A DNA stretch of 63,553 bases, the filler included, from Octopus bimaculoides (taxonomy: Eukaryota): NCBI RefSeq assembly GCF_001194135.2. It is 5 parts of 5 records of this genome, joined end to end, with 100 filler letters (N's around TTAATTAATTAA, not from the genome) between each part and the next. Parts side by side here need not be neighbours in the genome. Positions count along the whole stretch, not along the records: positions 1 to 31,136 come from NC_069005.1; 4 more parts are not named here. One strand, 5' to 3'. Made by a program: the position numbers and the translations under genes. Under the pieces are notes generated by a model. It was given only the letters and a program-made list of their open reading frames with translations, made no database searches and had not been told where the DNA came from. Positions 8,301 to 14,300 of the stretch are shown in pieces (the stretch's first letter is position 1; the number at the start of each line of letters is the position of its first letter).

Positions 8301-11300
8301 ACAAAACAACAATGCAACTGTTTATAAGGCCATAAATGGAGAATTAAAAACCCAAGGAAGGCCTTAACATAAACTTAATTGTAATTAAGTTCACTTTGTT
8401 TATTTTTCTGTGCCTATATCTATAAAATTAATGAATCCATATCAGTGAGGGGGCCGGTGCACATTGATGCCATTGAGAGGTAGGCCCCGAAACGGTGTGC
8501 ATTCTCTCCTGATGACCCCATACACTTGCTGGCTTCCGGTATGCGGAGTTCTCGACTGGTAGCACTTGCATGTGAGAGTTGTTTGCAAGACATTTAGTTA
8601 GCCAGTGTGATTAGAGAGACATGTCAGCTATAGAAAGGTTCCCAAAAGATCCTGTTATGGTTTCTAGGATAGCGTTATTAATCAAACAGGACAAGGTCTA
8701 CCTAACAGCTAACAGCTAACAACATGGTTAAATAATCACACTGGTTTTCATTCTTGTATGCCTGGTTATCTGTCGCTACCACCCCAAACTACTTCAAAGC
8801 CATATCATGAATTTTACTAAACAAACAAAAAGTCAAATGAGTATAACCTACCAGTTGGTAATAGTTGAGTTGAGGTCCTTCCTCATAGATCATGAACCAC
8901 CAGGCGGCAGCACCAACGGTAGCACAACCCACATATCCTGTAGTGGGTGGAGATCCACAGAGCAATGAGGAACAATATGGGGGAGAAAAAAGAAAGAAAA
9001 AGCAAAGGTCGATTTTAGTGATGACAGAAACAACCGGGGGGGAAGATGTTAACGTTTCACTAATGTTATGGAGAGAGGGAGAATATTAGGGGGCATGTCA
9101 CATCACTAGGGATAACATTTCATTCACATCAAATCAACAGGGCAAATATTCCACTGAAGCCTCACAGACAGCAAACCTCTCACTGCCTTCCCATGGGCAG
9201 GGGTAATGAGGTCTAACAGAAAAGGGCTAACATTACAACAAAGTCCCACAGAAAAGGGCTAACATTTCAACAAGATCCCACAGAAAAGGGCTATCAGTTC
9301 AGCGACATCCCACAGAAAAGGGCTAACATTTCAATGAGGTCCCACAGGAAAAGGTTAACACTTCAACAAGACCCCACAGAAAAGTTCTATCATTTCAACA
9401 AGGTCCCACAGAAAAGGGCTATCATTTCAACAAGGTCCCACAGAAAAGGGCTAACATTTCAATGAAGTCCCACAGAAAAGGGATAACATTTCAATGAGGT
9501 CTCACAGAAAAGGGATAACATTTCAATGAGGACTCACAGAAAAGGGCTATCATTTCAATGAGGTCTCACAGAAAGGAGTAACATTTCAATGAGGTCCCAC
9601 AGAAAGGGTTAACATTAGGGTGATGATAAATGGTATAACTGATGGTGATGACAGACAGAGGTTGGTGGGCATAGTATGGTAATGATAGAATGAATGAGAG
9701 ATTGTAAAAAAAAAGGAAAAAATGTGATAAGTTGGAAGGTAGAAAAGAGAAAAGGGTTACATTTAAAATGAAGTCAAACTAAGAACAGCCATCACCCCAC
9801 ACATGCAGAGGGTAACCGGTCGGAACAATTTTAAAATTATAATTTGTAATCTGTGACAAGGGTGAGGGCCCACATTTAAGCTTCCTTGGGGTGCAGAGTT
9901 GTGCACCATTATTGTGTCAAAGTGTAATGTTGCGATTCCATAATGAGAGGTTGAAAAAAAACAAGTCGGGAAGATGTACTGGGAGGTGGTGGTAGTACCT
10001 TGATGAATCAGCAAATAAATGAGAGGAAGAGATAATTAGAGTTTGAGAGAGGGGGAGATAGTGTGAGAGTGAGAGAGAGAATAGAGACTGTAATACTGAC
10101 CACCAATAGCCAAATATCGGAAGAACAACCATCCTGTGATGAGAGATTCTTTGGCACTCCTTGGAGGTTTTTTCATAATTTCAAGATCTGGAGGGTTGAA
10201 GCCCAAGGCGGTGGCAGGAAGACCATCAGTTACCAAGTTGACCCACAGCAGTTGTACAGGGATCAGAGCTTCAGGGATACCGAGAGCAGCAGTTAAGAAA
10301 ATACTGGAGTAAAAAAGAAAATAATAATATAAAGTTTGCAAAAAGAAAAAAAAAAAGAGAGACAAATTATGTAAGTTTTAATGAATGTTAATTAAGGAAG
10401 ACGAGACTAAATGCTGTTTACCCCATTTTTTAAAAAGCTTCTTTCTGTTTCATTATAAAAGCTAACGGTAGGTTAATGAATGGAATGCAGCACGAGTTGG
10501 CAACAGCCAGTTTGGCTCAGGAAAAAACAGGAGTCAGGGAGGATACCTCTATATGGTCATTTAATCTGCTAGAAATAACTCAAATCTTGGCCTGGCTCTA
10601 TGTTGGCTACAATCATCATCGTTTAACATCCGCTTTCCATGCTAGCATGGGTTGGGCGATTTGACTGAGGACTGGTGAACCAGATGGCTACGCCAGGCTC
10701 CAATCTGATTTGGCAGAGTTTCTACAGCTAGATGTCCTTCTTTGGAACAATCGCCTCATGAAATTTAAGTGCAAGTGGCTGAGTACTCCACAGACATGCA
10801 TACACTTAATGTAGTTTTCAGTGAGATTCAGCATGACACAGAATATGACAAGGCTGTCGTTTTTCAATTTCAGGTACAACTCGTTTTTTCCAGTTGAGTG
10901 AACTGGAGCAATGAGAAATAAAGTGTCTTGCTGAAGGATACAATGTATCACAGTGAGTCGAACACACAGCTTTACGATTACGAGCTGATTACCCAAACCA
11001 CTAAGCCACGCACCTCTGCAACTCAAATCTTAAGCTTACACTAGCTGGCATGAAAAGAGAGGAATAAAGCACGATTGTGTGTAGATGTGACCTGGGGCTA
11101 AAACAGCTACAAACAAAAGATCCATCATGGATCAATGTGAAGAAACAGAATCAATCCTTACCAAACAACTTCACCAACGTTGGAAGAGATCAAATATCTG
11201 ATGAATTGTTTCATGTTGTTGTAAATGGCACGGCCCTCCTCTACGGCAGAGACAATGGTTGAGAAGTTGTCATCAGCCAAAACCATCTGTAAGCTACAGT

Positions 11301-14300
11301 CAAGGAAGTTGGATGAACAAAACACAAGGAGAAAGCAATGGGACAGAGAGTGTAAGGGGAAAATGTTGTAATTAGTAGTTGTATGGGGGCATGCGTAGTA
11401 ACAATGTGTTGCTGCATCAACCATTTGTTGGTGATCCCCTGCTCCTGGTGGACCACTCCGGCAACAATCCTCCAATCCATGAGTCTGTTTGGTATTAAAT
11501 GTTGCTGGTGAGAGTTTTACAGGGGTGCAATTTCTCCATTAATCAATTAAAAACTTGTTGGAAACAGCTGTAGTGGATTGACATTATCCATCTGCTGTTN
11601 NNNNNNNNNNNNNNNNNNNNNNNNNNNNNNNNNNNNNNNNNNNNNNNNNNNNNNNNNNNNNNNNNNNNNNNNNNNNNNNNNNNNNNNNNNNNNNNNNNNN
11701 NNNNATATATATATATATATATATATATATATACAAATACACACACACACACTTACATAGTAGTAGTATGGAGGTGTGCACTGTAACAATGTGTCACTGC
11801 ATCCACTACTCCTTTGCACCACTCGGGGCAACAATGCTCCAACCCATGGGTTTGTATTGGGTAGTCATTGCTGATGAGGGTTTTATAAGGTCGGAGTGCA
11901 AATCCTATTTCAACCTCTTATAGTTGCCTTTTATGACTTGCAGAGGAAACATTGAGTCCATTCTTTGATATGCCAGGCCCCACACAGTATAAAAAAAACA
12001 CAAGCGGACTAGATGCAACCCAATTTCAGCAGTGCATAGTACAGCACCTTGGGCAAGTAATTTCCATAGCTCTGAGCTTATCAATGCTTTGTGAGTGAAC
12101 TTGGTAGATGAAAACTATATGGAAATCTTTCATGCATAATAAGTGTGTGTGTGTATGTGTGTATTCTTAGTAATATTTTTAGTTCAGGTGTGCCACCGAA
12201 TTTTGAAAAGAATGTAAGTGTACCACAAGTGAAGAAAAGGTTGTGGGGCACTGGAATATAACAAGTCTGTTCAAATCCTCGAGTGGTCAATAGTTATTTT
12301 GTTTGGTTCAAAAGCAAATGAAATTTTAAAAAAAACAAAGGATATCGGCAGCAGACTTGGCAACAGCAGTTCCGGAACCCATGGCAATACCAATTTCAGC
12401 CTTTTTCAAAGCAGGAGCATCATTCACACCATCACCAGTCTGGGTAAAAGAGAGAGAGAGAGAGAGAATAGAATTATATAGAGTGATGGGAAGCGGGGTT
12501 TAACTGGTTTGGTATAAGAAACATTGTGATGGAAGATGGTGATGGGAGGAGAGAGAGAGATACATATAAGAGGGTTGGGGTGTGAGACAAGGAGTAACAA
12601 TGTGAGAGGGGGAGAGCGAGAGAAAGAACACATGCGCGAGNNNNNNNNNNNNNNNNNNNNNNNNNNNNNNNNNNNNNNNNNNNNNNNNNNNNNNNNNNNN
12701 NNNNNNNNNNNNNNNNNNNNNNNNNNNNNNNNNNNNNNNNNNNNNNNNNNNNNNNNNNNNNNNNNNNNNNNNNNNNNNNNNNNNNNNNNNNNNNNNNNNN
12801 NNNNNNNNNNNNNNNNNNNNNNNNNNNNNNNNNNNNNNNNNNNNNNNNNNNNNNNNNNNNNNNNNNNNNNNNNNNNNNNNNNNNNNNNNNNNNNNNNNNN
12901 NNNNNNNNNNNNNNNNNNNNNNNNNNNNNNNNNNNNNNNNNNNNNNNNNNNNNNNNNNNNNNNNNNNNNNNNNNNNNNNNNNNNNNNNNNNNNNNNNNNN
13001 NNNNNNNNNNNNNNNNNNNNNNNNNNNNNNNNNNNNNNNNNNNNNNNNNNNNNNNNNNNNNNNNNNNNNNNNNNNNNNNNNNNNNNNNNNNNNNNNNNNN
13101 NNNNNNNNNNNNNNNNNNNNNNNNNNNNNNNNNNNNNNNNCTTCACCTTGCAAAAACTCAACAATTTTACTCTTGTGAGCTGGCTCCACACGGGCAAACA
13201 GTCTGGCCCTCATTACAGCAGCACGTTGCTCCTCTGGTGGTAAGTCATCAAACTCACGACCAGTGAAAGACAAACCAGAAGTAGATTCGTTTTCAGTGAA
13301 CACACCAATACGTCTGCAAATGGCCTCAGCAGTAGCCTGAAATAGAACAACAACATCATCATTCAAATAACATTTAACTAATTCAGGGGTTCTTAACCAT
13401 TTTTTTTTTTTTAATGTATGGACCCCTTTGATTACTTGATTTAGGGGGACTCCCCCCACAGCCATTCGATGTTTAAAAACTAGTTTTATTGAAACTTCTT
13501 TCAAAATTCCTATTTTGCTTTCAAATTGGCCCCAGTTGCTTATTTTAAAATCTAGTACTTATTCTACTTTATTGGACCCTTTCGGTGAATTGCTAAGTTA
13601 TGGGGACAAAAACAAACCAACACTGGTTGTCAAACAGTGGTGGATATAGACAGATATACACACACAAACATACACGCAAATATACACACATGCACACACA
13701 AACTAGAACTGCTCAAAGCAGATATTAAGATACCTGCATCCCACCTTACATTTTGCAGGAGGAACATGCAAAAGGCACTGAAGTATTTACATTACTGATC
13801 AGTTTAGAATCCATCCATGGCCAACATGTACTATATTTTTATACAAGAATATCCATTAACTGGGGCGCTTACTTCAGGTATTACATCAATCAAATTAACC
13901 ATGGTTAATGATGGTTCACAAAATAATTTTTTCTTCGTTAAGCTACTGTTTGATACATAATTCAAAATATTCTTCCATATAATTATAGACGGCTTTACTC
14001 TAAATGTAGGCATTTTAAAACATGGTATTTTGTATCCTAGGTGGTGGTCTCAAGTGAATTGGTACCATACCAACCAGAGGTGCTTCAATAAGAAGTGCAT
14101 TTATTTTATCAAATTCGAAATTATAGGTTGGTACCAATAGAACTTGATGAGGTTGTCTTGGGTGGGTTGGTTTCCTAGAATTATAAGATATGATCCCTGG
14201 TGAATTGGTATCATAGAATCAGTGGGGGTGGTCTCAGGTGGAGTGATACAAGAGAAATTGGTCACTCGAGATTTTATATCTGAAACATTCAAAACCAAAA

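Follow-up and report, generated by a model that had tools for sequence, protein, structure and literature searches.

The SERCA locus and its AT-AC intron

The DNA analysed here is a 63,553-nt stretch, filler included, made up of five joined parts of the Octopus bimaculoides genome (assembly GCF_001194135.2; in the following, the window). Its minus strand carries exons of a P-type IIA Ca2+-ATPase from 24783 down to 2198, covering most of the single SERCA (ATP2A-type) gene of the octopus. The encoded protein is 97% identical to the SERCA of Argonauta hians, and the exons are identical to the UniRef models A0A0L8FX15 and A0A0L8FWD6 of O. bimaculoides. One intron of the gene starts with AT and ends with AC, and is in all likelihood a substrate of the minor (U12-dependent) spliceosome. 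The intron, its signals and the two flanking exons are as follows; here and below a slash marks a splice boundary.

12439-12346, minus strand: upstream SERCA exon, 94 nt, with a normal acceptor before it (...CCCAG) and ending in ...AAG TCT GCT GCC G.
12345-11289, minus strand: predicted U12-type AT-AC intron, phase 1, 1057 nt as assembled, including 105 N.
12345-12337, minus strand: 5' splice site ATATCCTTT, 9 of 9 positions matching the consensus of the AT-subtype U12 donor.
11307-11299, minus strand: branch-site motif TTCCTTGAC, of the TCCTTRAY class, with the presumptive branch A at 11300 (12 nt from the intron's 3' end).
11290-11289, minus strand: terminal AC, 3' splice site, with AG ATG GTT of the exon next to it.
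11288-11162, minus strand: downstream SERCA exon, 127 nt, beginning AG ATG GTT and followed by a normal GTAAGG donor.

The 94-nt exon codes for 31 residues and leaves over a single G, the first base of a split Glu codon. Directly after this ...GCC G the intron opens with ATATCCTTTG, and at its other end it reads TTCCTTGAC-TGTAGCTT-AC, i.e. TTCCTTGAC-N9-AC, with ...AACTTCCTTGACTGTAGCTTAC running up to 11289. The 127-nt exon supplies the AG that completes the Glu codon, and then 41 further residues. Joining the exons at the AT-AC ends thus rebuilds the Glu codon and gives a conserved 73-residue stretch that is colinear with every SERCA in the database and aligns to residues 701-773 of rabbit SERCA1a (E = 1e-38). 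The split codon falls on Glu732 in this alignment, near the end of the P domain and ahead of M5, a position without evident functional meaning for the SERCA protein.

A sequence-only reading of this DNA had placed an AT-AC minor-spliceosome intron in the P-domain/M5 region of SERCA. All elements that it described are present on the minus strand at the positions listed above, and the Glu732 alignment agrees with the location that it gave. Its claim that AT-AC joining restores the conserved SERCA peptide was borne out when every donor/acceptor pair near the junction was tried: only the AT-AC pair, or its 1-base slide (TA-CA), restored the protein. None of the GT-AG pairs near the junction restored the conserved protein. 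The same reading had mentioned AT-AG splicing 2 nt downstream as an alternative encoding Asp; this junction is not in frame and leads to ...SAADGFG, with two stops within eight codons.

Strength of the U12 signals

The U12 motifs were judged against consensus motifs. Their mere occurrence is insufficient as evidence, as both are found at chance frequency in the window: in 31 kb the donor motif RTATCCTTT has 3 matches against 0.94 expected from shuffles, and the branch motif TTCCTTRAC has 1 match against 0.71 expected. The donor motif starts, however, exactly where the reading frame has to leave the exon, and the branch A lies 12 nt before the frame resumes. From the shuffle rates, we estimate that both motifs would fall exactly where the frame requires them, with the branch A within 8-21 nt, at about 2e-9 per junction, and the same arrangement is found again in eight other orthologous introns. 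The intron shows three features of the U12 class, namely an [AG]TATCCTT donor, a TCCTTRAY motif about 8-21 nt (optimally 10-15) before the 3' splice site and AT-AC termini. The branch A is separated from the exon by 11 nt (CTGTAGCTTAC), which leaves no space for a pyrimidine tract between the two; the pyrimidine content of the wider region is within the range of the gene's U2 introns (see below).

Of the other introns in the window, 16 of 17 are plain GT-AG introns, and the donor of the remaining one is hidden by an assembly gap. Among the 17 window introns with readable termini, the AT-AC intron is thus the sole one that is not GT-AG. No U12-like donor was found in the 15 scorable U2 introns of the gene. 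A single branch-like motif was seen in these introns; at about 25 nt from the 3' end, it falls outside the U12 range. A search of the window against Rfam gave no match. A second ATATCCTTT is present on the sense strand at 16665-16657, within the GT-AG U2 intron 17602-16586 and about 70 nt before its acceptor; it has no coding evidence for use and is consistent with a chance occurrence.

The same intron in other molluscs

Orthologous loci were fetched from Argonauta (an octopod), Liolophura (a chiton), Haliotis (abalone, a gastropod) and Argopecten (scallop, a bivalve). All four have a phase-1 intron that splits the same Glu codon behind its first base, and in all four this intron has the /ATATCCTTT donor, a TCCTTRAY-like branch motif and the end AC/AGATGGT. 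The lengths vary widely (605 nt in Argonauta, 273 in Liolophura, 2987 in Haliotis and 475 in Argopecten). The distance from the branch point to the 3' end hardly does so, the branch A being at -12 in 8 of 9 orthologous introns and at -10 in Argonauta.

The intron can also be recognised from errors in deposited proteins. Four further mollusc models, P0137 (Batillaria), P0155 (Bulinus), P0159 (Potamilus) and P0162 (Sinanodonta), read through the donor (G/AT ATC CTT) and contain the string '...KSA[AS]DIL...', after which they insert spurious residues or lose part or all of a conserved 16-residue stretch. The sequence-only reading had expected standard gene predictors to mis-model the junction. 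This was the case for the four garbled models, but the proteins from O. bimaculoides, those of RefSeq type and those on short contigs are correct. The O. bimaculoides models P0157 and P0168 already contain the AT-AC junction (KSA[AS]EMVLADDNF), and so do 997-residue cephalopod proteins on contigs of 3.5-5.4 kb, which we infer to be transcript assemblies.

A GT-AG counterpart in coral metagenomes

A scan of a metagenome collection with the degenerate DNA pattern T-A-V-A-K-x-A-x-G/RTATCCTT gave matches in seven contigs. Five (L010, L011 and L013-L015) encode a SERCA with an intron at the identical codon and in the identical phase, which reads G/GTATCCTTTTG ... CCTTAAC-N10-AG/AA ATG GTA. This is a GT-AG intron of U12 type, with the donor GTATCCTTT, the branch A at -12 and a length of 415-896 nt. 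A sixth contig, L012, has the same GT donor and stops before the acceptor. The seventh, L016 (JAAUXV010121271.1), carries at the same codon the AT-type donor ATATCCTTT (1413-1445) and ends about 990 nt after it, before the next exon; its SERCA fragment ('LFSRVEP', 'LPNAEAQKKAV') is not molluscan-looking. The site is thus conserved with U12 signals in the DNA of five molluscs, in four more through the read-through, in five contigs with both splice sites, and in L012 and L016 with the donor only.

The SERCA of the GT-AG contigs is 70-80% identical to every bilaterian group alike, and in a neighbour-joining tree it falls outside Mollusca on a long branch. Its gene lacks the intron before TGDGVND that is common to nine of nine bilaterian loci, and has other introns instead. 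The dataset Ga0126343, the source of L014, is the metagenome of the coral Cyphastrea sp. 2 (bioRxiv 10.1101/391565), and Ga0126337 and Ga0126338 are neighbouring project numbers. Taken together, the identity values, the tree, the gene structure and the dataset suggest that the GT-AG contigs very probably are host genes of reef corals.

Absence of the intron in other animals

In Lingula (a brachiopod), Lineus (a nemertean) and Tachypleus (a horseshoe crab) the two octopus exons correspond to one uninterrupted 221-nt exon whose outer boundaries are the same. The site is continuous also in Capitella (an annelid), where the exon is additionally fused to the next one, and in genomic open reading frame (ORF) fragments from a shark (P0062) and from the vertebrate-like P0008 and L001. 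In the lineages without the intron it is thus deleted, and not converted to the U2 type. The sequence-only reading had noted that the flanking exons add up to a single exon of 221 nt in human ATP2A2. In the loci covered here, TGDGVND...GEVV is unbroken in Lingula, Lineus, Tachypleus and the ORF fragments, the shark one included, in agreement with a single exon outside the molluscs.

Age of the intron and alternative explanations

We interpret 12345-11289 as a U12-dependent AT-AC intron of the octopus SERCA gene that is old and has been deleted repeatedly, and put the probability of this reading at roughly 0.85. That the intron is of U12 type and splits the Glu codon of ..SAAE/MVLADDNF, as had been proposed, is supported by the motifs, their spacing, the reading frame and the conservation between species. 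The proposal that it is ancient, kept in this lineage and lost in vertebrates also gained support, since all sampled molluscs and five metagenome contigs have it at the same position, with the caveat that the coral-host origin of the contigs is itself derived from their sequences and dataset. The intron most likely predates the split between cnidarians and bilaterians, judging from its occupancy of the same site in molluscs and the contigs. Such a history agrees with the general picture of minor introns, which are old, rarely gained, mostly lost by deletion and biased away from phase 0 (PMC10639083); Octopus sinensis, and molluscs in general, are known to have minor introns (PMC10639083).

Several observations weigh against this interpretation. 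Among the sampled bilaterians only the molluscs and the contig L016 have the intron, and with so patchy a presence an ancient origin requires at least three independent deletions. The annotated loci that were compared came from molluscs, a brachiopod, an annelid, a nemertean and a horseshoe crab, with none from cnidarians, echinoderms, hemichordates, amphioxus, sponges or placozoans among them; a protein search seeded with Ciona gave tunicate and vertebrate hits only. The documented source covers one coral contig only, and the DNA could belong to another metazoan living on the coral; the placement of the contigs is moreover that of a long branch in a simple neighbour-joining tree. As to the splicing itself, the exact bases are deduced from protein conservation and annotation. 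Finally, of the three hallmarks that the sequence-only reading had named, the extended donor and the near branch site stand, but the missing pyrimidine tract barely discriminates: pyrimidines make up 0.68 of positions -25..-4, a value within the range of the 15 U2 introns of the gene (0.64-0.86; mean 0.78).

The strongest competing explanation accepts a U12-type intron but not its age, so that it would have been gained in the mollusc stem, and the intron in the coral contigs and L016 would represent a parallel gain or belong to an unrecognised relative of the molluscs. On the annotated sample alone this is the more parsimonious view, as one gain replaces three or more losses: among identified bilaterians the intron occurs in molluscs only, it is absent from three other lophotrochozoan phyla, from a chelicerate rich in minor introns and from the vertebrates sampled, and molluscs are reported to be relatively enriched in minor introns (PMC10639083). 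The metagenome contigs led us to set it aside. They show the same codon and phase occupied in a SERCA that is outside Mollusca by tree and gene structure and comes from a documented coral metagenome, and L016 adds a further donor at the site in a sequence of non-molluscan appearance. For minor introns, in addition, gain in parallel is regarded as very rare and deletion as common (PMC10639083). We therefore consider a gain in the mollusc stem unlikely.

Two other explanations concern the class and the reality of the termini. Terminal AT-AC is by itself no proof of U12 dependence, and rare AT-AC introns are removed by the major (U2-dependent) spliceosome. Introns of that kind carry a pyrimidine tract, and their donor resembles that of U2 introns (ATAAGT-like). 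In contrast, the donor here is ATATCCTTT, nine orthologous introns keep a TCCTTRAY branch motif at a distance of 10-12 nt from the 3' end, and the branch motif is shared by the coral version, GTATCCTT...AG, so that removal by the major spliceosome is very improbable. It could also be argued that the AT...AC termini arose by a sequencing or assembly error in a true GT-AG intron, the window being a gapped draft with gaps in this intron and near 13141 and 2190. However, the same termini and flanking motifs are found in four independent mollusc assemblies of chromosome or scaffold level, the same donor is seen in the models of four further species, and the gap is hundreds of bases away from the splice sites. 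An artefact of this kind has next to no likelihood.

Proposed splicing mechanism and history

Use of the minor spliceosome is deduced from the signals described above, and the intron would be removed in the following way. U11 snRNA would pair with the rigid donor ATATCCTTT, and U12 snRNA with TTCCTTGAC, leaving the A at 11300 bulged. The 3' splice site would be set by the fixed distance of 12 nt from the branch point, and not by a pyrimidine tract. U4atac/U6atac-U5 would then finish catalysis with a cut after AC, whereby G and AG are joined to the Glu codon. These steps are those of the established model of minor splicing.

As for its history, the intron would have existed before the cnidarian-bilaterian split, its terminal dinucleotides would have switched on one branch, and clean deletions would have occurred toward vertebrates, the horseshoe crab, the annelid, the nemertean and the brachiopod. 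The switch between AT-AC and GT-AG may have gone in either direction.

A more speculative idea, raised in the sequence-only reading, is that the intron may limit SERCA output. It would have persisted in molluscs and corals over more than half a billion years as a slow, U6atac-limited throttle or switch, and the unproductive AG acceptor 2 nt downstream (ACAG/) would provide a frameshifting off-state. Molluscs and corals both move calcium on a large scale for their skeletons. As an explanation for the persistence of the intron, we nevertheless regard it as distinctly unlikely.

Relation to known minor introns

AT-AC U12 introns were first described in the human genes for P120/NOP2 and CMP and in genes for voltage-gated Na+ and Ca2+ channels. 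The SERCA intron resembles them in its rigid /ATATCCTT donor, the TCCTTRAY branch motif 10-15 nt from the 3' end and the terminal AC, as well as in its non-0 phase, its long-conserved position and a host gene whose product moves ions; for channel genes, AT-AC U12 introns are documented (PMC8767276). It differs from the known cases in that SERCA is a new host gene and that vertebrate SERCA is without an intron here, and also in its patchy distribution, since it is present in molluscs and probable corals and deleted in several sampled phyla.

Burge, Padgett and Sharp reportedly described in 1998 both GT-AG U12 introns and switching between the AT-AC and GT-AG subtypes at orthologous positions. 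The orthologue in the coral metagenomes, GTATCCTTT...CCTTAAC-N10-AG at the same codon, has the signature expected of such a switch. With the U2 GT-AG introns of its own gene, the octopus intron shares a comparable length (from some hundreds of nt up to about 1 kb) and a repeat-rich interior. The U2 introns differ in having GTAAGT-like donors, no branch motif near the 3' end and, on average, a higher pyrimidine fraction.

No literature linking SERCA or ATP2A to a minor intron was found, and a paper on SERCA evolution (PMC3527596) contains no intron data. The junction is on the other hand already present in deposited gene models, octopus is covered by genome-wide surveys of minor introns, the class is well known, and the intron would work as its class does. 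Our understanding of how minor introns work is unchanged by the SERCA intron, which is of value for its clean distribution among phyla, for the switch of subtype and as a warning to annotators. With SERCA, the main calcium pump inside the cell, another gene joins the ion-transport genes that have a deeply conserved minor intron, although in invertebrates only, as vertebrates have deleted it. The site is a clean marker of minor-intron loss, since it has either a U12 intron or an exact deletion, with an AT-AC/GT-AG switch in addition. The string 'AK.A.DIL' (or '...KSA[AS]DIL') is a simple flag for a recurring annotation error in mollusc SERCA, and in molluscs and corals the intron could be used as a convenient endogenous readout of how active the minor spliceosome is.

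Assembly gaps, repeats and an alternative exon pair

The remaining features of the locus are gaps, repeats and a pair of tandem exons:

11600-11704: assembly gap of 105 N inside the AT-AC intron; a (TA)n run adjoins its high-coordinate side.
11373-11488: intronic dispersed repeat, copy 1, 80-86% similar to its partner copy.
11758-11855: intronic dispersed repeat, copy 2, diverged, on the opposite side of the gap from copy 1.
About 13141 and below: second assembly gap, which takes the 3' end and the donor of exon 13142-13339.
About 2190: third assembly gap, starting 8 nt into the intron after exon 2198-2329 (aggtaagg/NNNN), the last exon seen.
4857-4988 and 2198-2329, minus strand: tandem versions of a 132-nt exon for the M7-M8 loop and M8, each with AG/GT flanks.

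The gap at 11600-11704 touches no splice signal: 632 nt separate it from the donor motif and 292 nt from the branch motif. Because it is wholly intronic, the reading frame across it is no issue and only the length of the intron is uncertain. Three observations show the two exons to be true neighbours: they agree in order, orientation and phase, the O. bimaculoides models join them, and Argonauta hians has an ungapped 605-nt intron at this place. The interior of the Argonauta intron did not align to that of the octopus intron and hence does not bridge the gap. The repeat copies flanking the gap, together with the (TA)n run, are a likely cause of the break in the assembly. For a 105-residue ORF adjoining the gap (11158-11475), a look-up found no other assembly that carries it.

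Stop-free stretches of different introns of the gene give near-identical peptides (e.g. ...LTVAMLE...), for instance at about 30650/15050, at 30400-30480/30160-30240 and at 26600-26700/18100-18340/5930-6100. These indicate dispersed repeat families across the introns.

In the models P0157 and P0168 about 28 residues are absent beside the second gap at about 13141, and both models skip three exons that the window does contain (24033-24113, 23346-23431 and 22338-22404). Their length of 885 residues, compared to 997, is mostly due to the three skipped exons. The two models differ from each other solely in the choice of the 132-nt exon version, and the two versions look mutually exclusive. The exon pair is found in all molluscs and in the brachiopod, annelid and nemertean sampled (L002, at 55396-55527 and 58717-58848, and also L003-L008), whereas the horseshoe crab and the coral contig have the exon only once, a distribution that points to a duplication common to Lophotrochozoa.

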